Shown: one piece after another, positions 7,930-29,500 of the stretch
Layout of the letters: every line of letters starts with the position of its first letter
Position numbering within the stretch: position 1 is the first letter of the stretch
Assembly (NCBI GenBank): GCA_964057225.1
Contig: OZ059895.1
Coordinates: 14,570,001 to 14,634,000, forward strand
Direction of reading: 5' to 3'
Origin: Auanema rhodensis
Taxonomy: Eukaryota > Animalia > Nematoda
Length of the DNA: 64,000 bases
Made by a program: the position numbers and the translations under genes
The notes under the pieces: model-generated
The model's input: only the letters and a program-made list of their open reading frames with translations
Databases searched by the model: none
What the model was told of the DNA's origin: nothing

Positions 7930-9429
7930 ATGGATTACTATAAAAACAAGTATGCTCCAATTGCTACATTAGCCAATGTGTTGCATAATTATCGACTGAC
8001 ATACACTAATTCTAAAAAATTGTGTAAGACTGCTATTACGACCGCCTCCAGCATTCCATCTAGCTTCAAATTTCCGATAGACAAAGATCTATGTGCTTCA
8101 TATATTGAGAAGATGCGTGGTCTTACTACGCATGCTTATCTCATAATAGCTACATGTCAGAAGATTGTACATTACCATGTATGCGTCTTGAAACAATCTC
8201 TTGCATATCTGGAAGACAGAACTCATCCTCTCTATCCTAAGCAATTCACAGAAGAACTTAGTGAACTGAACAAGCATTTATTACGTATAGCTTTTGATCG
8301 ATTACAAGAACCGTCTTCTCAATCTCAAACCTCATCCATGAGAAATGTCAAACCATATCCCGATACTCAACATGCTCGCAAACCTGAACCTACATCTAGT
8401 GAACCTGCTTCTAATCGTGTTCAAGTTAATCGTACTGTTGAACCTATCTCCGATGTTAAGTCTGAGCTCGATACTAAGCCTATTCACAACGCTAAAGCTA
8501 TACCCAACGCTGAATCCAAGCAAAACACTAAACCAGCTCTCAGTGCTAAGGCCAAACTTAAAACTAAACCTATAATGAATGTCAATCCTATCCTCGATAC
8601 TACATCTCTTCCCGATGTAAAGCCTATTATCGATGCAAAACCTATCCAGAAAACAAAGCCTGTCCAACTTCGTTCTCTCTCATATGCTGATAGATTACCT
8701 GATAACATGAAACACCTAATTGATTCTACTAATATCTTAACTATGCCCATATCTGTTTTAAAAACTCATCCATCCTTATCAAACTTTGTTATGGAATTAT
8801 CAATCAAAGCTCTTGGTAAGAAACATCCAAAGGAAGTTCAAGATATAATTGATGAAATTGGTATAATTAGCAAACAACTGAAACAATCATTATATCCCCA
8901 AGTAGAATTGAATTTTGATAATTTAGTAGAACGACTGAAAGAACTAGATGAAGCACAACTAACTCATGATCCTTCATATGCTGACTTCTTGAAAACAAAT
9001 CCATTAAATGAAAGACTTAAATTCAAAAAAGCCGATATCGATGAAACTTTTGCCGAAACTGTGGAAATTCACTTGAAATATATGCAATTTGATGTTCGAA
9101 ATACTCAAAACCTAATGGATGCAGCAGGCGCTGATAAGCATGAGTCAGTTAGTGATGAGCCTAAGTCTAAAATTCGCAAAACATCAATGATGAAATGTCC
9201 CGCTTGTATGGAATATGGCCATGTTATGGCTGACTGTAAGACATATCCTACAGCCGAAGCCCGAATAGCACAGTGTCGTCTACTAGACATCTGTACCAAC
9301 TGTTTATGGAGACATTCAGTTCTTACTGATAGGTGTAAGTCTGGAACAAGAAGTTCATGTCATTATTGCGAGTCGAATCATAAAAAATCCAAACATCCTT
9401 TTCCCCTTTGTCCCATCCGCTTTTCATGA
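7930..9429 (+). CDS. Intronless 499-aa protein with C-terminal triple Cys/His knuckle resembling BEL/Pao retrotransposon Gag
   Basis: CPACMEYGHVMADC...RIAQCRLLDICTNCLWRH...C...CHYC...HPFPLC; uninterrupted 1.5-kb ORF in an intron-rich genome. Confidence 0.7.
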   Translation: MDYYKNKYAPIATLANVLHNYRLTYTNSKKLCKTAITTASSIPSSFKFPIDKDLCASYIEKMRGLTTHAYLIIATCQKIVHYHVCVLKQSLAYLEDRTHPLYPKQFTEELSELNKHLLRIAFDRLQEPSSQSQTSSMRNVKPYPDTQHARKPEPTSSEPASNRVQVNRTVEPISDVKSELDTKPIHNAKAIPNAESKQNTKPALSAKAKLKTKPIMNVNPILDTTSLPDVKPIIDAKPIQKTKPVQLRSLSYADRLPDNMKHLIDSTNILTMPISVLKTHPSLSNFVMELSIKALGKKHPKEVQDIIDEIGIISKQLKQSLYPQVELNFDNLVERLKELDEAQLTHDPSYADFLKTNPLNERLKFKKADIDETFAETVEIHLKYMQFDVRNTQNLMDAAGADKHESVSDEPKSKIRKTSMMKCPACMEYGHVMADCKTYPTAEARIAQCRLLDICTNCLWRHSVLTDRCKSGTRSSCHYCESNHKKSKHPFPLCPIRFS

Positions 9430-10305: not shown

Positions 10306-11744
10306 CTTTCATATACAGGGTTCAAAATGTCTATCAATACCACCTTCTGCAGCAATTTCTTATTATATTACAGCATTTTTCTTGTATTTTATATACATAA
10401 GCATATGAAAAGCATATATGTATGTATAATCCAGTTAAAGATGCTAAGACTGTCTGACGAAATCATCAAATATCTCGATATATCACTAATGATAAACATA
10501 CTCAACAATGAAACTGAAAAGAATGTAATTACGTAATAAGAAGTTAATTAACTAAACTAATGAAGATCAACAATCAAAATATATTTGATACAGAGATTAA
10601 TAACTAATTATATATATATAAAGATAGTAAAAATAATAGCAAATGAATTAAAAATAAAATATGTTGTAGGGAAATATATGTAGGAAAACCAAATTATTCA
10701 TTTAAAATTTATTTGATATAGTCATGTGGGGAACAACAAATACGAATTTCTTAATGATAACTGGAAAATAATTTTTAATTTTAAGTTTATATAAGATATA
10801 TGACATTCTTTTTAAAAATATGTGTTTTATTTCTTTAAAACTTTAATTCAAACAAACCTGAAAAAACAAGAGGAAATATAAAACTTCAAAAAAGGAAATA
10901 TATAAAAATTAATTTTACTTTTAATAACTTGAAAACAAAGCTGTTAAATCTAATGTTATATTCTAATCTAAAATAAATAATATTTCTAATCCTATCAAAC
11001 ACACATTATAATCTCAATACTTAGTAACAGCTTCTCAGCTTAACAGCTTGATAACGTTAAGACGTAGAATTGAGAAGATAATCGCTTTTCTGTAGTGGAA
11101 TTCTTAACCATACTTCGTTCAGTTGTGAGGAATTTTTGTTGAGCGTTACGAGCATGAAAGCCTATCAAACTACAGCTTTGATCAAAACCAAACATCCCCA
11201 TCAGTGTATTATGGAAACTAATAAACTGATATATCTTGGAGAAAATACATGAATTGCATTTCAAATTCTTAAATTTAAGATCATTGTGAACGTATAACTT
11301 TAAAGTTCTAAACATCAGCCTGTTGCTTGTAAAAGTTGGAGCCTTTATAGTTTTCAACTAGCAAATTCACAATTTTTCTCATATAATATAAAGAATGATC
11401 TCATAAGTGGTTTTTTCTTTTTAAATCAAAGAACAATAAAGGTTTCATAATTAATATATATAAATTGCAATTAAATTAATTATATCAGTACTAACATCTG
11501 CTCAATTATAAATTCAATAAGTTATTAATCTTTTTTTCAATTTATGGAGTTTATACTCATTATTAAAGATTAGTTAGTACAATATTTAATTTCCAATTTT
11601 TATTTCAATTATTATTAAAATCCAACGAGCGTTAATTTCAAAAATTATGAATTCTACTGTAATAACCCTCTACAATCACTTACAACAATGATAAACAAAG
11701 CTTAAACTTGGTAAACTAGCTTTCTAACTTCATATAGCTAATGC

Positions 11745-11837
11745 TGCTCTCCAGTGGAGAGCGTTCCAAAATTTAATTCGAACACAGAATGTTTCTGGTT
11801 GAATCAGGAAAGTACCTCAAACTTGGGTAATTAAACC
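11745..11837 (-). ncRNA. sls-1: SL1 spliced-leader RNA gene, copy 1
   Basis: Reverse complement gives GGTTTAATTACCCAAGTTTGAG|GT (exact 22-nt SL1 plus donor), Sm site AAATTTTGG, terminal hairpin GCTCTCC-ACT-GGAGAGC. Confidence 0.97.
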
Positions 11838-12085
11838 GACGAAGCAGTGTCACCCCCCAGTGGCATCAATGCACGTGTCGTATCACAGAGACGTGCTGTA
11901 TCTCTCCCCCTAACATGATAAAGACCGTCTCTCTTGACTAGACACCATGGGTCATACACACGTGTAGGCTACATCTGAACTTGGCTCATCTCAACTATAA
12001 TTCTCAGAATGATTATCATCTTCGTTGATTTTTCAATTTTAAAAATCCAAAGAACTTCATTCATCTAATGATTTTCGATTCATGT

Positions 12086-12178
12086 TGCTCTCCAGTGGAG
12101 AGCGTTCCAAAATTTAATTCGAACACAGAATGTTTCTGGTTGAATCAGGAAAGTACCTCAAACTTGGGTAATTAAACC
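12086..12178 (-). ncRNA. sls-1: SL1 spliced-leader RNA gene, copy 2
   Basis: Same SL1 exon, donor, Sm site and hairpins. Confidence 0.97.
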
Positions 12179-12407
12179 GAAGATGCAGTGTCACCTCCCA
12201 GTGCCGTCAATGTAGGCGCCGTATCCCATTGGGGTGCTGTGTCTGCCTCTAACCCACATAGAGATTGCCGTTTGTGAACAACCTCTCATACAGCCTGAAT
12301 ACAACTGCTCATCTCAACCCCAAATCCAAAAATGATCTTCATCCTCATTGACTTTTCTATTTTAAAAATCAAAGAAACTGATTTATCTAAAGACATTTGA
12401 TTCATGT

Positions 12408-12500
12408 TGCTCTCCAGTGGAGAGCGTTCCAAAATTTAATTCGAACACAGAACGTTTCTGGTTGAATCAGGAAAGTACCTCAAACTTGGGTAATTAAACC
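12408..12500 (-). ncRNA. sls-1: SL1 spliced-leader RNA gene, copy 3
   Basis: Same structure; stem-loop II loop ACG. Confidence 0.97.
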
Positions 12501-12897
12501 GAAGATGCAGTGTCACTGCCCAGTGCCGTCAATCGAAGCGCCGTATCCCATTGGGGTGCAGTGTCTGCCTTTAACCCACATAGAGATTGTGTCTCTTTAC
12601 CAGACAATGACTACTGCATAAGAGCCTGAACCAGAAAGCAGCCTAGATTTGTGACAATTTCCCATAGAGCCTGTGTATAACCGCTCTTTTCTACTGAAAT
12701 TTTAGAAATAAACGGTTATCTTCTTAAATTATATGAGCCTGAGCTACTTAGTACTTAAGTTCGTGAACAACCTCTCATACAGCCTGAATACAACTGCTCA
12801 TCTCAACCCCAATTCCAAAAATGATCTTCATCCTCATTGACTTTTCTATTTTAAAAATCCAAAGAACTTGATTCATCTAATGATTTTCGATTCATGT

Positions 12898-12990
12898 TGC
12901 TCTCCAGTGGAGAGCGTTCCAAAATTTAATTCGAACACAGAATTATTCTGGTTGAATCAGGAAAGTACCTCAAACTTGGGTAATTAAACC
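12898..12990 (-). ncRNA. sls-1: SL1 spliced-leader RNA gene, copy 4
   Basis: Same structure; stem-loop II loop TAA. Confidence 0.97.
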
Positions 12991-13386
12991 GAAGATGCAG
13001 TGTCACCTCCCAGTGCCGTCAATATAGGCGCCGTATCCCATTGGGGTGCTGTGTCTGCCTTTAACCCACATAGAGATTGCCTCTCCACACTAGACAATGA
13101 CTACTGCATATGAGCCTGAACCAGAAAGCAGCCTACGTTTGTGACAATATCCGATATAGCCTGTGTATAACCGCTCTTTCCTACTGAAGTTTAGCAATAA
13201 ACGGTTATTTTCTTAAATTATATGAGCCTGAGCTACTTAGAACTTAGGTTTGTGGACAACCTCTCATACAGCCTGAATACAACCGGTCATCTCAACCCCA
13301 AATCCAAAAATGATTATCAGCTTCGTTGATATTTCAATTTTAAAAATCTAAAGAACTTGATTCTTCTAATGATTTTCGATTCATGT

Positions 13387-13479
13387 TGCTCTCCAGTGGA
13401 GAGCGTTCCAAAATTTAGTTCGAACACAGAATTATTCTGGTTGAATCAGGAAAGTACCTCAAACTTGGGTAATTAAACC
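13387..13479 (-). ncRNA. sls-1: SL1 spliced-leader RNA gene, copy 5
   Basis: Same structure; loop TAA plus one substitution at the base of stem II. Confidence 0.96.
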
Positions 13480-14974
13480 GAAGATGCAGTGTCACTGCCC
13501 AGTGCCGTCAATCGAAGCGCCGTATCCCATTGGGGTGCAGTGTCTGCCTCTAACCCACATAGAGATTGCCTCTCCACAGAATCTTCTATATAACCTGAAT
13601 ATAACCGCTCTTTCCAATTGAAATTTTTGAAAGGAACGCTGTCTAAATTAGAGAGCCTGAGTCTGAGGATAATCTTAAGAAAAGTTGATTAAACTTAATG
13701 TATTCATAAAACTAACAATATAATTTACAAATAAGTTAGTAATAGAAATGTAAAAATCAAATTACATCTAGTGATGTGAAGCAGATCGAATAACTGATTA
13801 GACAGTAAATGCTAATGAAAATTTCAAATTAGGTTTTTTTTTGAATAAATACAGTTTTTCTTCAGTTAAGTTGTCTGAAATTAGTATTTATATGGATGTG
13901 CCAAACTTTTTGAGTATGATTGTAATACATGAATGGACACGTGAATTGACGTGAAACTCATTTTGTTATGTAATTTTTGACTAAACGGCTGTTCATGATT
14001 ATATTGTTCAATCATTTCAGATAAACTTAACCTGTATTATTTCTCTTAACTATATAATTTAGAATTGTTTATCATTGTTTACGCATAATCTCAAAATATA
14101 TTTGTTTTTACACATTATTTTGTATTTTTTAAAAATAAATGCTATTCTCTCTGTTAATATTTTATGTAATAGTTTATTATTCTTAAATTTAAATGATACT
14201 TACATTTTCTTTTTATGCTTTTCATGTGATTACTGTTATATATCAAATTTTAATAAATGGCTTCATAATGACAGTAGTTTTGAAACAAATGCTAGTTTAA
14301 GCATAACTTATTCTGTATAATTTATAAAAAATCTAGAAGTCTAACATTCTCTCGCCTGGTTATTCATTAAAGCTTCGGAAAGTGCCTGAGTCTAATGCCA
14401 CAGGCAAATATAGGCGATGACGAGTGTTAGAAGCCGAATACTAAATAACCCAAAATGATAATAATAAATGAAATAAATTTAAAAAATGTAAGATTTATTG
14501 AGAGGAGAAGTATAATTCATCTTCTTATCCAATGTTTTTCAAGTAATATCGTCAATAACAACAATCAATTTCAACAAATACAAATATTTTGTAAGATCAA
14601 TTGAACATAAATGGAATTATAAGATGAAAATTCCATAGAAAAAAAAGAAAAGAAAACAACAAAGTTAAAACAAATAAATATTGGAATGAGCACATACACA
14701 TACGTCATATGAGATCGAAAAATATATTTGTGTGAGTAAAGATAATTAGAGGATTGGTGCATAGAAGTTCATGACACGATTCATCAGAAAAAAATTGTTT
14801 TTCTATGTCAAAGGCAAGAAGATGGAACAACTACAGGAGCCAAATATGAGAATTACTGTTCCAAGTACTGAGTACCAAATTTTAAAAAATAAAGAAGAAA
14901 TGAAAAAAGAATAAAGGAGTAAAGGAAAATATTGCCCCCAGGGCTTGATATTGGATGTTGTGATTGATTACTAA

Positions 14975-17952: not shown

Positions 17953-18607
17953 CTAGAAAAATTGGAAATCTACAAACAATCACGCATTAATAAAATGTGA
18001 ATTATTCAATTGACCCTTAATTGGCAATTAAAACCGTTTACGAATGTTATAAAAAGTAATAATTGCTATGAATACAACTAATAATAAACTAAAAAAAAAC
18101 ATTTTGAAACATTTATTTATGAAATTCAAATATTTCAAACGTTTTTCTTTAATCACTTTCAGTTTCCTTAAAATCTGACTAGTGTTAAACATTAAAAAAC
18201 GAATAAAATCATCTATTGACATAGTTAAAGCTTAGTTCATCACCTGAAACTCAAAAATAATTCTTTTCCTATTCCGTATATATGAATAATTTAGTTGATA
18301 ACAACAACAAATTGATGTTCTCTAAATTTCATTAGGGTATCCTGAGAAGTTGAAGTTGAACGTAAATACAGCTGAATCAAAGTCATATATGACTTTGATA
18401 TATGCATATTCATAAAGATACTTGTTCAAGCAATTCATGAGAAAATCCAATTTCACTAAGCGATGGTAATATCTGAGCTTCTGGAATTAATTAAACATGA
18501 ATTTTAGCTGATTATTCACATAAATGACTTACCCAAACAGGGTGGAGCACATTATATTTCAATCCAGAGGTTGTTTACTGCTTTTCATATATGACATTCT
18601 GATTCGT

Positions 18608-18775
18608 TGAATTATTATTTCTCAAACTTTAATTGGTGTCTTTGATGATAGCTAAAGGTCATTCAGTTTCTTATAGTTTATACTTAGTATTATCATTTAA
18701 TAGAATTATTTTTTGTGATATAGTCACATTAAACAATTCAAAGACACCAATCAAAGTGTAAGAAAAAATCATTCA
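18608..18775. repeat. Imperfect ~38-bp inverted repeat pair (MITE-like)
   Basis: TGAATTATTATTTCTCAAACTTTAATTGGTGTCTTTGA (18608-18645) versus the reverse complement of 18738-18775, about 6 mismatches. Confidence 0.65.
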
Positions 18776-18934
18776 TTATATACATTATTATACAGAAATG
18801 TTAGTATAAAGTATGAAAAATATAAAATGCATTTGAATATTTGAGAAAGAGGGAGAGAGAGATGGTCCACAAACGTATGAGATCAGAAATTGCTCAGCAA
18901 TTCATACCATATTTACAGGTAAAAGAAAGCTCTA

Positions 18935-20030
18935 CATACCTGGTAGTCATTCAATTTGTATTGATCTTGCTTTTCATTCGTTTCTATCAGCTTAACTATA
19001 GCTTTTTGGCTCAACTGCTCCACACCGAAGAAGAAGCAGGAATGGTATGGGCACATATTCTCCCATGGATTTTTTCTTATCACACAGCATGCTTGCAATA
19101 GGCAGAACAGCTCCAGTAGACTTTCTCGGAACATACCTAAATTCATATTTTCAAATTTATAATTAATTAACAAACACAAACCTTCCTCCGTTAGTGTATG
19201 GATCACCGGAAGTTGGTGCTTGCCCCCTAGTAGAGCCAGGAACATAACGTCCGCCGCCAGTGAACAGGTCTTAAAGGCGGAAGAACCTTCCTGACCACTT
19301 CCCTGAGGACAATACCTATCACAACCTAAAAAATTGAAATTTTACAAAAAAATGAAGGAAGAAAGAGACAAACCAGTACAAGGATCACGACAAGAGAACC
19401 TTAGCCATAAATTTAATAGGAAGATTATATTTTTCACAAAATTGTTGAGCATGATAATCAGGGTCATCTCCAGCGTTGTAAGCTAACGACTTCTACACAC
19501 TAGGTTTCTTCAAGTTTCATTTTTTAGCCTGGAATTCAGGGGCTTCTGGTACATTTGCAACAATATAATCCGTGATTTCATTCAATTAAGAAATTGCCAG
19601 ACTATATTACTAAAAAAACAGAAATATGAGAAAAAAAGAAAATAGAAAAACTGCCTGAATGAATTGTTCAGCTGATAATACTAAACAGTATTCTTCTTAT
19701 AATTCAATTCCATGTTAGGTGCAACATCATCCAAAGCAACTTTGATTGTAATTTCATCCCTAGCTACTCATTCTTCTCTCCCCTTTTCCGAAGCAACTCG
19801 TACGGCCAACTAAACAAATAAATAAAATAATAAAGTTAGCATGTTTAGACTTACTTTTCTGTGCATAAGTTCTAGCACTTCAGGCTTAGCCAGGCGAGAA
19901 TGCGAATTGGTATATACATAAATACGACCATCACTAAAAACAAATATAAGGAAAGGAAGTAGAACTGAAAAATTACCTTCCAAAAACAGCAAAGTCATCT
20001 TTGCTCAGTCAAATTACAGACCATGCTCTA
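18935..20030 (-). pseudogene. ufd-3: Partial ufd-3/PLAA (Doa1) pseudogene: end of WD40, PFU domain, DPFTG repeats, start of PUL
   Basis: AWSVI*LSKDDFAVFGSDGRIYVYT, YNAGDDPDYHAQQFCEKYNLP, DLFTGGGRYVPG...GDPYTNGG, KAIVKLIETNEKQD; in-frame stops and frameshifts; introns retained. Confidence 0.8.
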
Positions 20031-20048
20031 AATATGAAAATTCTTATA

Positions 20049-20186
20049 AAGCTAATACATATACAAGCGCAACCAGAAACTATCCAAAAAAAGAAGAAAA
20101 CGTAATCTCACCTTGTGCGGATTTGTTGCTGGGGTAAAGGCATATTCTGCATCATCTCAAATTTATCATTTCCCATCAGATATTTC
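20049..20186 (-). repeat. Inverted near-identical copy of an unc-16 exon end and intron (27484-27621)
   Basis: Direct reverse-complement match over ~138 bp. Confidence 0.95.
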
Positions 20187-20187
20187 A

Positions 20188-20322
20188 TAAAAAACGACAA
20201 TGAGTTCATAAGCTCCGCCTACTTGGCGTGTTTCTTCAGATTACGCTGTTCGACGCACAGGATGTTATAGCTATATTTCTAGCTTGTATATTAATTAATT
20301 ATTATTTATTAATATAAATATC
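20188..20322. repeat. Inverted copy of coq-8/unc-16 intergenic DNA (26255-26389)
   Basis: Reverse-complement match over ~135 bp, about 4 substitutions. Confidence 0.95.
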
Positions 20323-20324
20323 GT

Positions 20325-20830
20325 GAAGTGTTTGCAAATAGCAGTTAATGGTGGAAATGTTGTTGATCCTCAAAATCCGACCGAGGTAGAGCTTAACCAT
20401 ATTCTTAGAAGTTTAGAAGCACATTGTTTTAGTCTAGAACTTCAATCACAGATGCATTAGAACGGGCTAACGTTGTAGCGACGGGAATTAAGACTTTTGC
20501 CCAACTCATTTCTCAAGGTCAGTAAACTAATGATAATTATCTATGGTTTCTTTTCAATTTCAGGGGTACTTCCTGGTAGTGGAGGTTATACTGTAAATTC
20601 GAATGGAGAAAAAGTCTTTGGTGTGGGTAGTCTTCGAACGCCTGACTTAGTTCAAAACTTGACTAGAGTAGCAGATCTTGTGAAAAGCGGAGCTATGCAA
20701 ATTCCTTTAAATGTTTTCCCTAACTTAGAGAAGCTTGGACAATTAGGCTCGAAAAAGGTAGAAGCTGTATCAGCTGCAATGTTCGGAGAAAACATTAAAA
20801 TAGGTGAATTTTGGCTATGAATTCGCACGA
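20325..20830 (+). pseudogene. Inverted near-identical fragment of the coq-8 5' exons and introns (25426-25931)
   Basis: ORFs 20497-20820(+) and 25436-25759(-) differ by one residue; 506-bp match. Confidence 0.95.
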
Positions 20831-21881
20831 AAAAAAATTCGAAAAAATTAATTTATGCTATGGAGTTTTTCAATACTCTTTTCGATAAAAATTTTTTCTG
20901 GTTCCAAACTATTGGGCAGAGCTTGAGAATCACTCTCACCAACAAAACTTTTCGCCTTCAGTCTCCAACCAACATTTCCCTAACCTACTTGCAAAACGCA
21001 TAAGCCTGTATATTCATCTTCTACGTTAAAAACCAAAGATCCCTCACGTAGCAATACACTCTAGGTTTCTTCGAACCAAAAGCTCTACCTCTTAGTACAC
21101 ACACCGTCCTGAATCTCGCGACTCAGCTGCAGTAACAAGAAGCCGAACTCGCACACAAAGTGTCGCTATCATCAACGAAGATAAACCAGAAGACAAGCCT
21201 AACACCGAAAAATTCTACACACCTCGTGCAGGTGCTTATTCTCCTTCACAACATTCCAGCTATCCGGATTACACACCATCTGGAGAAAACGAGACACCAC
21301 GGATCACAGAAGAACACACTTCTAACACTACTAAGAAAGAAAAGCCTTTTAAAATTTTTGAAGTTCAACATGCGGAGCATTTATTTTTGCTTTGCTTTGT
21401 ATACTATAGTAAACTTTAAAGTTATTCGCATACTAACATTCTATCTTATAAACGCAGATATCTAAAATTCTTGCTATGATCAAGATTAACCACAATTTTG
21501 CTTCTCTCGAGGAGGACGCGACATAATCACGAAAAAAAGGGCCGTTCCATTCTGATGATCGATACATAGCAAGAAGGTTAGAAATAGACGACATGAACCA
21601 AGAGTAAATGACACGCCCATAAACCTGTAACAAGACCTCAACTTTGCCCATGGACTAACCATGAACGGCTTGTCATCGCCACAGAGTTCGTTTATAGTTT
21701 ACATCTTTATTTAGTCTTATGTATATTATTGTATTCATGTAGTTATAATAAACCTTTCATATGTCGAGTCTTATGTTATCCTTGTGCTCCATAATAACCG
21801 CTACATTTGGAATACTACTGCGCTCATCTTGTAGGCTACATCGGTCTATAGGATGGATGCGGGAGCATAACGGAACGGCAC

Positions 21882-21980
21882 ATGCCAAAACTGTTTCGAT
21901 TGTAAGGTCTTTCACTGTTCTTGGCGGTACGATCACTATCGGTGTCTTTCTAAATGTTGTCGCATAAACATGCGTGATCC
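21882..21980 (+). pseudogene. Inverted diverged fragments of the tetraspanin gene (22688-22771, plus last-exon ATGCGTGATCCT)
   Basis: AKTVSIVRSFTVLGGTITIGVFLNVVA versus AKSVSIVTSFSVLGGIMTIGVFLTVVA; about 10 mismatches in 84 nt. Confidence 0.85.
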
Positions 21981-21995
21981 TTTCTAATCTAAATT

Positions 21996-22917
21996 ATATC
22001 AGAATAATGTGTCAGGATCTACATTAGGATCACGCATATTTCTAAATCTGTATGCTAGCCAGACTCCAATTAACTAAAAAATTGATATCAAGTAGTCAGA
22101 ATACCTATTGAAATAGCTTACCTCAGTAAAACTGAACACCAGACTCATCATTCCCACACGGGACAAATTCGAGCTAGTTACATATACAATGGCATTGAGA
22201 CATGGAGGGCATCCATTTTCCCAACATGGTAGCTAGAATTATAAGACATAAAAGAAAACTTGAAAGACACAAAAACTTTTCTGCAGTTACTTGGAGAATC
22301 TTTAACATTCTTCAATCCACAGCAGCTGAATGCTTTCTCAGCATCCCATATGACAGGTCGACTGGATCGAGCCCAACCAGCTTCAACAACCTTAAATTAA
22401 AATATAAATCTTATAATAAATTCCATTATTAATGTTGACGGGTATAATAGGTTGTATATAAGCAGGAAGAAATTCAAAATAAAAAAACACCTTGCTTAAG
22501 CTGCTTTCAGAAACATTTCCTAAACAAGCTATTGCAACGCTGAACTGAATGATAAAAAGAACAGCCAGAATAATCATATACTGAAAATTAGTAAGAATGA
22601 ATGAAAATGTTAGGAAAGAGGATATGAAGAAACTCACAAAGAAAAGAGAAGGTTGATGCTGAGTTTTTGCACCATAGACACCCAAGCATGCGACAACAGT
22701 TAGGAAGACACCGATAGTCATTATACCACCAAGAACAGAGAAAGATGTTACAATCGAAACAGATTTGGCATACGTGCCGATAAGTATTAGTATTAGCCCA
22801 ACGAACTGTAAAATTAGGAGAAAGAATTCAGAAAAAATAAAAAATTCGACTTACGACATAGAAATAATTGAGAACAACTAGAGCTTTTCTTGTGAATTTA
22901 AAAGAAAAGTATGGCAT
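21996..22917 (-). CDS. Tetraspanin, TSPAN13/31-like
   Basis: Four TM segments, FSCCG motif, C-terminus LIGVWLAYRFRNMRDPNVDPDTLF*. Confidence 0.88.
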
Positions 22918-23117
22918 CTGCAAAACAGTACGTGAAATGATAAAGACAGCAAATAAAGAACAGAGAAGATATTAATATGTAAGTTATACATATTTTGATT
23001 AAATAATAGAAATAAAACAAATAAATATTATCCATAAACTTTTTAAAAATAACAAAACAAGAAATATACAACAAATCACACCGGCTTTGAGAAAAACCTA
23101 AGAATCAAACTAACTAT

Positions 23118-26068
23118 CTAATCAACTCTATCTATATCTATAGTATTGGAATCATCGCCAAATTTAAAATTCGAATAAATCTCATTATACATTCCACCAC
23201 ATGACACAGTTGCTTTTAGTTTCACTGCAAGTAGATAAGATCCAGCTAACTTGCGATGAAGTGAGTAAATTTCTTCAGGAGGCGAAGTAAGTCTGAGTAA
23301 TAGAAACACTAATAAAAAAAAATAATTAAGAATCGATACCTATTTTCAAGCATGACAGGGATCATTTCATGAATTCGTTTGGTTAAAGTTTGCTTACTGA
23401 AGTCATAGGGATGATCACTTGCTAAGGTTTCACTAATAATTTTAATCGAAGCTATATGAGCTTCCTGCATAATCTGATTTTCATATCCAGTTAAGAAACC
23501 AATATCTTGTGAATATCTAAAGTGAAAGTTTACTATGAGAAAAACTTATCAAGCTAACGAACTCTAATATTTTTTTCTCGTCGGATTCATATGCTGCCTT
23601 TATGATTTTCATGTATTTATCAACGAATTCTTTCCCATAAGAACGAGAAGCTCCAAAATCAAGAAGGATTAGACGGGGCTCCCCTACATAAACATTTGTA
23701 TTAAACAAGTATATGTCATATCAAACCTGTAGTTGGGTGAACGCCTAAGTAGAAATTCGACCAGTTTGGATCTGTTTGCATGAATCTCCACACGAAGATC
23801 TTAAACACAAAAACAAAGTAGTAAAAAAGATATTCAATAATTACCTCGTTCAAACAAAGTTCAATAAATTTGCCAGCAATATAATCTCGGACAACTTGTG
23901 GTTCGTTCAAACACTTATCCACTGGTTTTCCAACAATGAATTCAGTTGTCAAAACTTGATCTGTAGAAAGATTATCAATAACCTAAAAAAGGAAATAAGC
24001 CTTTGAAAAAGAAATTAAAAAAACCTCCGGCACATAATAATCTTTAGAGCCAGCAAGAAGATTTCTAAATTCTCTAGTAGCTCTTGCTTCTCTCAAATAA
24101 TCACATTCTTGGCGTAATTCTCGACGAGCAACCTAATTGAAGGAATTAGTTTTTCATAGATTTAAATTAAATATACTTTAACAAACTCCTCGAGATGCAT
24201 TCCCTTAGGGAAAAGCCCTCCAACAGATAGTACCGAGACAAGATTATCGATGTCACAATCAATGCCTAGTAATAATCAAAAAATTAGAAATCAATATTTA
24301 GAAAGTACCTGCAGCTACACCAGGGTATTGAATTTTAACTGCTACTACACGACCATCTTTCAATACTGCTTTGTGTACCTAAAAATCAACAACTCATATA
24401 ACATGTCTCGATATTTGGCCAATATATTTTTAATTTGAAATTGAGAGTCAAAAATAAATAGAATGACGTAAGTTACACGTGAGAATCATTTCATATTAGA
24501 GCAAGTTAAATAACGGCTGGATCCGCTGTATACAACCAAAAAAGCATGAGAATAAAGTGAGATAACCAAAACAAAGAAAAAATGGGGAAATGAATTACCT
24601 CTCCAATAGAAGCAGCAGCAAACGGCCTTTCCTCAAAGGACTCAAAGTGGTCGCGCCAGTCGCTTCCAAAGGAAGCTTCCATTTGTTGGCTTACCTTTAA
24701 ATAAGTTTGAAATTCGAATTTAAAGCTAATTTCGGCTTACTTGTGCCATTGGCATGAAGTCTGCACTCTGTCTAACCCTCTCAAAAATTTCAAGAAGAGC
24801 TGGAGAAACAGTGTCGGCATCCTGTATCGATAACATTTGACCAAGTTTAAGTGCTGCTCCTCTAACCTAACATTGAATTGTAACTGTTTTTCCTCTTATA
24901 AGCTCCTTACTCTACAAAGAGTTTGCACGATTCTTTCCCCGTTAGCTGTGGAAAGAAAGGGGCTTTTCGTTTCTGCTTTGCCAATCCCGAAAGTTCTTCT
25001 CGTTATTTCTGCTGCTGCTCCTCCCGCTAATCCGATAGCTAATTGACCAAAATTCGCAAATCTAAACAGGATTCAAAACATAAGATCGTATTAATAAACA
25101 AACCTTCCAATACGGGTAGACGGCACTTTGCTTTCTTTGCTATTAGCTAGTATAGCAGATCTATCTTCTGCTTCTACTTTAAAATCTTTGGGGAGAGCAG
25201 GACGGTAAACCTTCAAATGAAATATTCAATATATATAACAATACTATACTATACATTGTCATGAGAGCTCATTAGTTTTTGAACTGCTTCTTCGTCATTG
25301 ACTGACTGTGCTGCTTTAATAAGAAATTGTTCTTCTTCTGGGGATAATCCAGTATCATTGACTTGTTCAGTGGTTGAAACTTGGATTGTAGGAATAGCAG
25401 ACCTTTGAGCTAAATATTCCGCATATCGTGCGAATTCATAGCCAAAATTCACCTATTTTAATGTTTTCTCCGAACATTGGAGCTGATACAGCTTCTACCT
25501 TTTTCGAGCCTAATTGTCCAAGCTTCTCTAAGTTAGGGAAAACATTTAAAGGAATTTGCATAGCTCCGCTTTTCACAAGATCTGCTACTCTAGTCAAGTT
25601 TTGAACTAAGTCAGGCGTTCGAAGACTACCCACACCAAAGACTTTTTCTCCATTCGAATTTACAGTATAACCTCCACTACCAGGAAGTACCCCTGAAATT
25701 GAAAAGAAACCATAGATAATTATCATTAGTTTACTGACCTTGAGAAATGAGTTGGGCAAAAGTCTTAATTCCCGTCGCTACAACGTTAGCCCGTTCTAAT
25801 GCATCTGTGATTGAAGTTCTAGACTAAAACAATGTGCTTCTAAACTTCTAAGAATATGGTTAAGCTCTACCTCGGTCGGATTTTGAGGATCAACAACATT
25901 TCCACCATTAACTGCTATTTGCAAACACTTCCGAGAAATTTTTTTTTCTACTTTACGACCCTCATACCCCAGTTGACTACGAAAAATTAAGCCTACTCCT
26001 TCAAGAATTGGTGAGATCTCCCGTTCACACTGGCGAATCAACGATATTAATCGCTGACCGTTATTCAT
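23118..26068 (-). CDS. coq-8: COQ8/ADCK3-4 atypical kinase (ABC1 family)
   Basis: [72 protein letters not shown]. Confidence 0.95.
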
Positions 26069-26548
26069 TGAGATCTACAAAAAATTCTCATTCATTAAAA
26101 AACTATAAGCATAATAATCTAGATTTAAAGAAAAACATGGAATAACATAGAACAGCACCTGCAGATGAATAATTAGAACAGTAAGAGAAAGTTATTTTTC
26201 TTTCGCAAATTTTTAGACTTTAAGAATATTTGAAAGTAATTATTAATTTTACAAGATATTTATGTTAATAAATAATAATTAATTAATATACAAGCTAGAA
26301 ATATAGCTATAACATCCTGTGCGTCGAAGAGCGTAATCCGAAGAAACACGCCAAGTAGGCGGAGCTTATGAACTCATTGTCGTTATTTACCGTATCTCAT
26401 ATAACCAGCTGAGGCACATGGCATGTATTGATTCAGTGTTCTTTGAGCTTCATAACAACTTGATTTGAATCATATTTGTATTAAAAGCGATTTGTACACA
26501 TATAATTCATTTCAGGAATGTTATAAGAGTGAATATTAGTCTAACATT

Positions 26549-29500
26549 ATGGAGGAACCGTCGTCAAACCCTAGTTCTGAGGTTAGTAATCATTTTATTA
26601 TCCTTTTTTTGGATTGACAGAGTAACTGTAATTGTCACTGTGGAATAGTTAGCAACAGTGGCAATAGCCATGCTGTAATCGTCCCCGGTGACCTTGTTAT
26701 CACTTTCGATAATATTCTGCGTACCCACCCGTTGACAATATGTTTGCATTATTTTGATTGTGTTTTTTCTAGGTGGTTTACGGATCCACTGGGTCTCCAC
26801 TTGGAGACGAAAATCGGGTAATGTCCGAGAAAGTACAAAATATGGCATCAGCCATTTATCGAGAATTTGAACTAATGATTCAAAAACAGGGAGAAGATGG
26901 TGTAAAGGTAGGTTATTATACTTTTTATTCGAGTATTTTGTTATTTTTATAGAATTTGATGCCACTTGTTGTAAATGTTCTTGAAACTCTTGATGTTACT
27001 CTCCTGGAAAGAGACGAAAATGCTGCTGATGTCGAAATTTTGAAAGAAGATAATGAGCAGTTACTGAATATGTTTGAAAGGGAAAAAGCTCTACGTAGGG
27101 CCGCAGAACAGGTTTGTTGTATACAACTTTTTTTACGAGAGCGTTTGCTTTACCAAAACATTTTTATAGAAATATATGGAAGTAGAAGATAATATGGTTG
27201 GAGAGAAGAAGGAACTTGAGAATAAGATACAGTCACTTGAATCAATAATGAGGATGCTTGAATTAAAAGCCAAGAATGCTGCTGATCATGGTATGCAGTA
27301 AATCAATATTCATAGTTTATGCTTTATCTTTTGCAGCTGCTCGTTTGGAAGAAAGGGAAGCTGAGCAGAAGCTCGAATTTGATCGTCTTCATGAAAGGTT
27401 GATACTTCTATTTAACTTTTTAGAAATTCCTTATTCAGATATAATACCCTTCTACGAACTCATGTGGATCATATGGAAAGAACGAAATATCTGATGGGAA
27501 ATGATAAATTTGAGATGATGCAGAATATGCCTTTACCCCAGCAACAACTCCGCACAAGGTGAGATTACGTTTTCTTCTTTTTTTGGATAGTTTCTGGTTG
27601 CGCTTGTATATGTATTAGCTTGATGTTGTGAGTTGGTGATGGCCATGACTGTAATCATAGTGCTGAAAGCTTTTTCTTCTAAAAACCGTTCAGGATGTAG
27701 TAGTGTTCCTTTGTTATAGCTTGTACCTGCCCTCTGGTTTGCAGTATTCGTGAGTTTTGCTACTTGTTTAGGGTGCATGATTTAAGAATCTTCATATTCT
27801 GTGCTACTATTTAGTGTGTTTCTGTTGCTTCTGTGATTTATGTTGTTTTTTTGTTCTTTATGTTAACATATTTTCAATATTTAAAATAACAATTTTTTAA
27901 AATTGATATGATATGTATATCATTCTAACTTTCCTGTTTTAGAATGGGAATGGCTGCTTCCGTTGATGCTTCCAATATTCGTGGTGTATCTGATTTAATC
28001 AGCGCTCATATGACCCAGAGTACCACTATGGATGTTAATCTTGCCAATCACATCACCGAAGGTTAGATACAATATCTGTTCAATCATTTTTTTCGTTTTT
28101 TAGCTGATTGGCAGGACGAGTTCTCTTCGGATGTAGAGCCTTCTCCAAGAGATCTCCCAGCTGAGAAGTTCGAAGTTCCACAAGAAGAGGAGAATCCACA
28201 AACTGAGAAGCGTATTGAACATACTTCACCAGAACATGCTGAAGTGAATAATGGGTATAATTTGAATTTCATGGAGTAATTTCTTGAATTCATTTTTTAG
28301 TGATGGACAAGAAGCCTCAGAAGTTGAAGATACCCTTGGAGCAGACCTCACAGGTATGAGTTTCTCCGTTTTATTACTTGAAAATACACACTCCCTATTG
28401 TTACCATTATTAATTCATAATTCACGTCTTCTTTTCACTATTATCTTTCTAAACGTATAGGAAACATCGTTGATCCTGCAGAATTTGCCTCAGCCGGTAG
28501 GGTTCATGATAATGTAGTAATCGTGAATATTATTATTGTGTTGTCAAGCTTTAAGTTATGTCCTTTTGCACATTTCTTGTGGAATCCCACTTCTATTAGT
28601 TCACTTTTCCCCTTTTGCTTGTTTGCTTTATTTTATCGTTGTGTTGTGTAGATCTATTGGATGAGGACTTCGATTTCGAACCAAAGCATAGGATACGATC
28701 AACATCAGAAGAGTCGGATGATCTGGGTATGATTATTTATGTTTTTCTCGTGGTTGCATGAATGGGTATGAAAGTTGAACTTTAAATTGCACGTCACTGG
28801 CATTTGCACGCTAAGCCATCTAACTTTAATTTTCTATTTTCTAACCTTCTGATTTCAGTTAATGATACATTCATAGGTGGGTTTTTGTTGTGTTGTTCAA
28901 CCATTTGTGTTGTGAAAACAAATAATCTTTCGGAGGGGGTGCGGGGGATTTTTAATATACGAGCGAAAAAACAATTTTATGTTATGAGTCTCAAATCGGT
29001 TATTTATCAGAGATTTTTTTTTAAAAAACTAATCCTGTCATGAAAATAGTTAATTTTGCCAAAAAAAATAACAATTCGTAAAAGCATGGCTTGATCGGAA
29101 GATGTATCTTTCTGGTTTTCTAACAAGGCTCATTCAGGAATGGGACGTGAAGTTGAAAATCTTATCAAAGAAAATACTGAACTTATGGACATGAAGAATG
29201 CTCTTAACATTGTCAAGAATGACTTGATTGCTCGTGTTGATGAGCTGAGCAGGTTGTACCTTTGTTCTAATTTGGTTTTACGTGAATTTCTTTGTAGTGA
29301 GAATGACATTCTCCGTGATGAAGTTCGCAGTCTTGAGATGGTTAGGATTAAGATGGGAGATACAATTGAGAAGTTGGAAGAAGAAATCAAATCATCTAAA
29401 CTAAAATTAACAGAGAAAGAAACTGAAAATGAAGAGGTTAACTTAACACTCAGAATCCTTTTTTATGTATTAGTTCTAGGAAGAAGTACCGAATGCCCAT

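Follow-up and report, generated by a model that had tools for sequence, protein, structure and literature searches.

A mirror-image patchwork of pieces from three neighbouring genes lies downstream of a tetraspanin-like gene of the nematode Auanema rhodensis (also written A. rhodense). It was analyzed within a 64,000-nt stretch of contig OZ059895.1 (C3:14570001-14634000, the window), and positions given without a contig name are counted within this window. The patchwork consists of inverted copies of parts of an unc-16-like gene, of intergenic DNA, of a coq-8-like gene and of the tetraspanin-like gene itself, and its arms are of two clearly different ages. From the anatomy of the sequence, we favor a compound fold-back duplication at the DNA level, which would most likely be a neutral scar that two stages of break repair left behind, and not a dedicated small-RNA gene. 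The probability of this reading was put at roughly 60%.

Anatomy and age of the inverted pieces

Inverted pairs were called by a repeat search and by BLAST, and genome-wide matches were sought in the assembly of 180,911,798 bases and 112 contigs. Five pairs were recovered, and the order of the five inverted pieces exactly mirrors that of their sources on the other side of a 44-nt spacer (21982-22025; features are listed in Table 1). This result agrees with the initial annotation, which had described inverted unc-16, intergenic, coq-8 and tetraspanin pieces as an interrupted palindrome centered on the tetraspanin stop codon. The symmetry center was indeed found at about position 22003, and the stop codon, a TGA at 22001-21999 of the minus strand, lies inside the spacer. 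The spacer is unique in the whole genome, and the genome-wide matches of each copied piece comprised only the copy and its source. The four long pairs are the sole long inverted repeats of the window, and the mirror arms are interrupted by skips of 320–2,650 nt. Terminal inverted repeats flanking the mosaic were not found, an internal inverted repeat of at least 25 nt was not found within it (18934-21981), and lenient BLAST of the mosaic against the remaining window did not reveal further weak homology.

Quantification of the mismatches did not yield uniform results for the arms. The inner arm (16 + 84 nt) is 88% identical to its source, whereas the identity is about 99% for the outer block of 785 nt. 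The outer block had 8 mismatches in 785 positions, in contrast to 10 in 84 positions of the inner tetraspanin piece (Fisher p = 1e-6), and most of these 10 differences alter the amino acid. The outer block is made up of pieces of 141, 138, and 506 nt that share one polarity, and their sources are separated by 1,094 and 320 nt. Half of its mismatches (4 of 8) are located no more than 12 nt from a junction, among them 3 of the 5 mismatches of the intergenic copy. After trimming of 12 nt beside the junctions, the three outer pieces were homogeneous (p = 0.12). In summary, the structure is more complex than first described, and the presence of arms of two ages had been missed.

The region between the two arms (20831-21881) had been left open at first, but it is not an empty spacer and holds a fragment of a dispersed repeat and the remnant of a long terminal repeat (LTR) retrotransposon. 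The dispersed repeat occurs at four or more loci elsewhere, which resemble one another over about 170–200 nt. From the retrotransposon, two internal pieces (20906-21344 and 21382-21541) and the complete 3′ LTR are left; at least 800 nt are missing between the internal pieces, and no 5′ LTR is left. The counterpart of the first internal piece in a full element directly precedes an open reading frame (ORF) with the domain Retrotrans_gag (PF03732). The family has at least 40 matches with 70–82% identity, and every copy stops sharply at ...CATAACGGAACG, with unrelated flanking sequences. In the window, this terminus meets the tetraspanin copy exactly, which is an integrase-type junction. Because the LTR terminus abuts the arm exactly, the inner tetraspanin arm can be regarded as older than the element.

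The pieces between 20049 and 21980 were thus recovered as first described, but the left limit of the mosaic was not, because the patchwork runs on to position 18934. The additional part is a fragment of a ufd-3/PLAA-like gene, which adjoins the young inverted block directly and has its source on the chromosome-scale contig C5. The source gene contains a PFU domain (PF09070) in addition to WD40-like exons, hence the label ufd-3/PLAA-like. Two deletions, each of about 105 nt, divide the fragment into three blocks, and both removed exon sequence. Since intron sequence was kept and exon parts were lost, it is a decayed pseudogene piece that was copied at the DNA level. A common 'CG' filler at both deletions was considered and rejected; they are plain deletions with one adjacent substitution each.

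Copying from DNA and the proposed order of events

The coq-8 copy retains a canonical intron of 46 nt (GTCAGT...TTTCAG) at 20518-20563, and none of the junctions of the mosaic is located at a GT..AG border. Given the retained intron and the absence of splice sites at the junctions, the copies were made from DNA. An origin by splicing or as a processed retrocopy is ruled out by these two features and by the position of the A-run within the dispersed repeat. As the A-run is part of this repeat, a poly(A) tail following the coq-8 piece was rejected.

A different RNA-mediated origin would involve the reverse transcriptase of the retrotransposon, which might have jumped from the element RNA to an unspliced RNA of the coq-8 region and produced a chimeric complementary DNA (cDNA). 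Such a cDNA would fit the plus strand in two respects: it carries both the coq-8 piece and the element in sense orientation, with the host block located 5′ of the element remnant and the 3′ LTR. However, the retained intron, the jumps away from splice sites, and the A-run that belongs to a dispersed repeat and is no tail do not fit, and neither does the antisense orientation of the unc-16 and ufd-3 pieces on this strand. The ages do not agree either, since the element part is at most 82% identical to any relative in the genome, in contrast to the nearly 99% identity of the host block to its source; a family member with more than 95% identity to the element of the window has not been seen so far in the genome. 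Therefore, we regard a chimeric cDNA as very unlikely. Capture of gene fragments by a Pack-type element or a Helitron was also considered and rejected, because the 3′ LTR is the sole terminus of the element that is left, and the host pieces are located outside it or 5′ of the truncated interior.

The junctions of the outer block contain a single orphan base at 20187 and overlaps of 1 nt at 20325 and 20831. Such junctions are typical of end joining that is poor in microhomology and involves templated synthesis. Abutting blocks from non-contiguous templates with 0–1 nt of homology are also the basis for likening the young block to microhomology-mediated break-induced replication (MMBIR) and fork stalling and template switching (FoSTeS), which are forms of template-switching repair. 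We claim only that the young-block event would work like template-switching repair, and the sequence is not taken to point to a specific enzyme.

In germ cells of C. elegans, single-nucleotide homology and templated inserts mark end joining by polymerase theta (PMC4490562). The young block resembles these products in its abutting blocks from nearby templates, in the homology of 0–1 nt or 1-nt filler, and in the substitutions near the junctions. In contrast, the templates of polymerase theta inserts are 'in close proximity to the break' (PMC4490562), whereas the blocks of the mosaic are 138–506 nt long and their sources are 4.6–7.4 kb away.

Fold-back duplications offer another close comparison, and a single-copy spacer between inverted arms is their hallmark (PMC3907307). 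The mosaic shares with them, and with short templated inverted insertions at breaks in yeast (PMC11724301), the mirror arms, the short single-copy spacer, and complex breakpoints with extra copied pieces. In contrast to both, it is tiny (an arm of 16 + 84 nt and a spacer of 44 nt), interstitial instead of terminal, and has interrupted arms; a clear inverted microhomology was not seen at the edge of the spacer. The ends of the spacer (TTCTAA... and ...TACATT) are not complementary. GGATC/GATCC recur near the edges, and the divergence of about 12% makes the original junction unreadable.

The mirror order of all five pieces would also result from one event, namely, from a single old inverted duplication of the entire 5.6-kb segment 22026-27624, which would have been shrunk by deletions and by the retrotransposon while gene conversion preserved the longer arms. 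It is in favor of this explanation that the LTR landed in a pre-existing arm, that the ufd-3 and retrotransposon remnants show deletions to be frequent at this site, and that the identity declines with the length of the arm, from 506 nt via 141 and 138 nt to 84 nt. However, conversion tracts should end in homology of about 88%, whereas the identity jumps from about 99% to nothing detectable by BLAST, and diverged homology was not found beyond any of the outer-block edges. These sharp edges argue that a young block was inserted and not that an old arm was converted. In addition, a separate recent conversion that did not restore the intervening parental DNA would have been required for the arm of 138 nt and for that of 141 nt, and the three outer pieces have one common low divergence. 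A single old duplication is thus unlikely. Two events are favored because the arms differ in age and the outer edges are sharp.

An assembly artefact, produced by a chimeric or fold-back read, was also weighed. A fold-back read would give a perfect and uninterrupted palindrome, whereas the arms are 88% to 99.8% identical, are interrupted, and contain an integrated LTR and other repeats. The locus is not at a contig end, but at 14.59 Mb on a contig of 24 Mb. The germline assembly of A. rhodense APS4 has a size of 180.9 Mb and is based on PacBio HiFi and Hi-C data with 236-fold HiFi coverage in gene-rich regions (bioRxiv 10.64898/2026.08.27.747507), and the reads are longer than the whole structure of 7.6 kb. 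Misassembly is unlikely, and the chance that a single aberrant read created the mosaic is minimal.

For the favored two-stage origin, the following order of events is proposed. An old fold-back event would have mirrored the 3′ part of the tetraspanin gene around the 44-nt loop. Subsequently, an LTR retrotransposon would have integrated into the arm with the tetraspanin copy, and deletions would have followed. Much later, a break in the junk DNA might have been mended by synthesis of low processivity, for which an unc-16 exon/intron piece, intergenic DNA, and the 5′ part of coq-8 could have served as templates, on the opposite strand and at the distances given above. Two hops with overlaps of 0–1 nt would then have generated the block of 785 nt.

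Several points weigh against this order of events or against its interpretation. The term 'neutral' is deduced from the anatomy. That the young block came to lie on the mirror side, next to the old arm, requires either a coincidence or older homology that has since been lost. The copied blocks of 138–506 nt from a distance of 5–7 kb exceed typical templated inserts of polymerase theta. The drop of the identity with arm length (506, then 141, 138, and 84 nt) is what length-dependent gene conversion would give. Lastly, regions of double-stranded RNA (dsRNA) in C. elegans are often located in unannotated 3′ extensions less than 1 kb from genes (PMC4408787), and therefore, read-through into the mosaic is not implausible.

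Potential to form double-stranded RNA

The geometry for a hairpin RNA had been recognized in the initial annotation, and it was confirmed that transcription of the minus strand through the mosaic would yield coq-8 antisense RNA, from 20830 to 20325. Read-through from the coq-8/tetraspanin unit could thus provide a natural hairpin or antisense source, in which the coq-8 RNA pairs with the 506-nt arm, is cleaved by Dicer, and yields predicted endogenous small interfering RNAs (endo-siRNAs) against coq-8. The orientation is correct for this, and the arms of 506 nt have only one mismatch to coq-8. The arrangement of the two genes also fits. They share one strand and are separated by about 200 nt (22917-23117, from the coq-8 stop codon to the tetraspanin ATG), and the tetraspanin ATG at about 22916 immediately follows a trans-splice-like acceptor, TTTTGCAG. 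Because of these features, coq-8 and the tetraspanin gene seem to be an operon-like pair, and one pre-mRNA may span both. The intervening DNA is devoid of a canonical AATAAA. Precedents exist in two other species. In C. elegans, many edited dsRNA regions are found in unannotated 3′ extensions, and 31% of the regions overlap with endo-siRNA loci (PMC4408787). In Drosophila simulans, new hairpin loci arise beside the parent gene from inverted exon fragments (PMC10317233).

Nevertheless, the coq-8 arm begins 1,170 nt beyond the tetraspanin stop codon, past AATAAA motifs at +292 (21711) and +618 (21385). The two coq-8 arms are not in one defined transcription unit, and the coq-8 duplex would form only if transcription continued for at least 1.2–1.7 kb past both poly(A) signals. 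Whereas both arms are present in the hairpin loci described so far, the mosaic itself does not contain an inverted repeat. Moreover, it is not obvious how the animal would benefit if the pre-mRNA of an essential single-copy gene silenced this very gene. The long distance, the two AATAAA motifs, and the missing internal inverted repeat make a function of the coq-8 hairpin less likely, and we consider a natural hairpin source directed against coq-8 rather improbable.

For the tetraspanin arms, it is plausible from their positions that both are contained within one transcript. Over roughly 240 nt downstream of the tetraspanin stop codon, a hexamer resembling a poly(A) signal was not found, and therefore, the 3′ untranslated region (UTR) probably includes 21981-21882. 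The likelier transcribed duplex is thus probably a stretch of about 100 nt in the tetraspanin 3′-UTR that is antisense to exons of the same gene, forming imperfect duplexes of 84 bp and 16 bp. The minus-strand RNA from 22790 to 21690 was folded in silico. In the minimum-energy structure as well as in the centroid structure, 22771-22688 was predicted to pair with 21965-21882. The energy of the predicted duplex is −117 kcal/mol, and its 74 Watson-Crick and 2 G-U pairs are interrupted by 8 mismatches. As its perfect runs do not exceed 15 bp, it would be a poor substrate for Dicer and a possible substrate for editing. That the mosaic is a working cis-regulatory hairpin is improbable, be it by tuning of coq-8 via siRNAs from read-through transcripts or by self-regulation of the tetraspanin mRNA by the exon copy in its 3′-UTR through editing or Dicer.

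The likeness to known RNA systems is partial. The hairpin RNA loci of Drosophila also contain an inverted exon fragment near the parent gene with transposon fragments mixed in, and some of the new loci are located in existing 3′-UTRs (PMC10317233). However, both arms of these loci are in one defined transcript apart from the target, whereas in the case described here, the parental gene itself forms one arm. The predicted duplex of the tetraspanin exon and 3′-UTR would belong to the same general type as the dsRNAs in 3′-UTRs and long introns of C. elegans that are edited by ADAR (PMC4408787, PMC6239182). In contrast to this duplex, which is imperfect and has a coding exon of the same gene as one arm, the cases in C. 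elegans are mostly transposon-derived and non-coding.

Parental genes, surroundings, and biological meaning

The parental genes were labeled on the basis of domain searches that were run exon by exon. The coq-8-like gene, with its stop codon at 23120-23118 of the minus strand, has exons with an ABC1 kinase domain. The RH1 domain of the unc-16/JIP3-like gene was found in two exon pieces, each of which scored slightly below the Pfam cut-off, and the copied piece of this gene (27484-27624) comprises about 75 nt of an exon end and about 66 nt of the next intron. For the tetraspanin-like gene, neither the Pfam scans of the single exons nor a word search with an open stretch of 152 residues gave a match. 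The name 'tetraspanin' remains a label at the level of motifs, that is, a CCG motif, several hydrophobic segments, and a tetraspanin-like N-terminus.

Table 1. Coordinates of the mosaic, its sources, and the parental genes within the window
Feature	Position (strand)	Source or best match	Remarks
Decayed ufd-3/PLAA-like fragment (PFU-domain region)	18934-20031 (-, sense)	C5:6740547-6741852	90-95% identical
Inverted copy of unc-16 exon end and start of the following intron	20046-20186 (+)	27484-27624	141 nt, 2 mismatches, E 5.5e-52; antisense to unc-16
Inverted copy of coq-8/unc-16 intergenic DNA	20188-20325 (+)	26252-26389	138 nt, 5 mismatches, E 4e-48
Inverted copy of coq-8 5′ part	20325-20830 (+)	25426-25931	506 nt, 1 mismatch, E 0; coq-8 sense on plus strand
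Short dispersed-repeat fragment	20830-20900	four loci on C1, C4, C5	78-88% identical; includes a run of eight A
LTR-retrotransposon internal piece, just upstream of gag	20906-21344 (+)	many copies	70-82% identical
Internal 3′ end of LTR retrotransposon, polypurine run	21382-21541 (+)	element copies	homology to element copies
Complete 3′ LTR	21542-21877 (+)		terminus ...CATAACGGAACG, adjoins tetraspanin copy
Old inverted copy of tetraspanin exon piece	21882-21965 (+)	22688-22771	84 nt, 10 mismatches, E 1.9e-21
Short inverted copy of last tetraspanin exon	21966-21981 (+)	22026-22041	16 nt, 15/16 complementary, mirror order
Single-copy spacer (fold-back loop)	21982-22025		44 nt; holds last tetraspanin codons and stop codon
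Tetraspanin-like gene	21999-22916 (-)		CCG motif, transmembrane segments, N-terminal pattern; carries arms 22026-22041 and 22688-22771
coq-8-like ABC1 kinase gene	23118-26068 (-)		PF03109 in exons at 23520-23952; ORFs; carries parental arm 25426-25931
Parental intergenic piece	26252-26389		between coq-8 and unc-16
unc-16/JIP3-like gene	starts near 26800 (+)		RH1 domain exons at 26773-27189; carries parental arm 27484-27624

The mosaic is embedded in about 12 kb of gene-poor, repeat-rich sequence that has the character of junk DNA. Between 9.5 and 18.9 kb, no gene was found, only tandem repeats and short open frames, and Rfam families were not found between 18 and 28 kb. One of the tandem repeats (11697-13638) has 4–5 units with spacings of about 320–490 bp and 60–93% identity. 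Lenient BLAST revealed self-complementarity, with about 64–65% identity, in two AT-rich segments of about 170 nt (18035-18201 and 18608-18775). One of them has arms of 38 nt with 87% complementarity, and both may be decayed small fold-back elements. Further to the left, an uninterrupted ORF of 499 aa (7930-9429, plus strand) with a Cys/His-rich, zinc-knuckle-like C-terminal end had no Pfam match and may be transposon-derived.

Members of the retrotransposon family were also inspected elsewhere in the genome. A full-length element of about 10.8 kb (C3:3323566-3334370) lies inside a satellite with a period of about 295 bp. It has a pair of LTRs of 347 nt, a TGG... primer-binding site after the 5′ LTR, the ORF with the gag domain PF03732, and an ORF of 538 aa without a Pfam match. 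Its LTRs are 99% identical, and therefore, this element is young. The LTR pair, the primer-binding site, and the gag domain led us to reject the interpretation of the terminal repeat in the window as the end of a long interspersed nuclear element (LINE) or of a Helitron. The same family is inserted in or beside long tandem arrays of intact transfer RNA (tRNA) genes. One array (C7:12372000-12381999) contains 40 tRNA-Leu(AAG) genes in 10 kb with a period of 167 bp, and two further arrays consist of tRNA-Ile(AAT) and of tRNA-Glu(CTC) genes, the latter repeated about every 271 bp. These arrays are consistent with the 19,554 tRNA loci reported for A. rhodense.

Taken together, this kind of structure is already known, and the locus is a further case of it. 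It is a natural example, which can be cleanly dissected, of how break repair would build mirror-image patchworks of gene pieces beside their parent genes, and its two events can be separated by age and ordered relative to the insertion of a retrotransposon. Such patchworks are the raw material of the hairpin RNA loci of flies. Without transcripts or small RNAs over the arms, the mosaic is a structural curiosity. If RNA covers the arms, it would represent an early stage of a nematode hairpin locus in which an essential gene takes part; as a working cis-regulatory hairpin, it would be a locus caught at birth.

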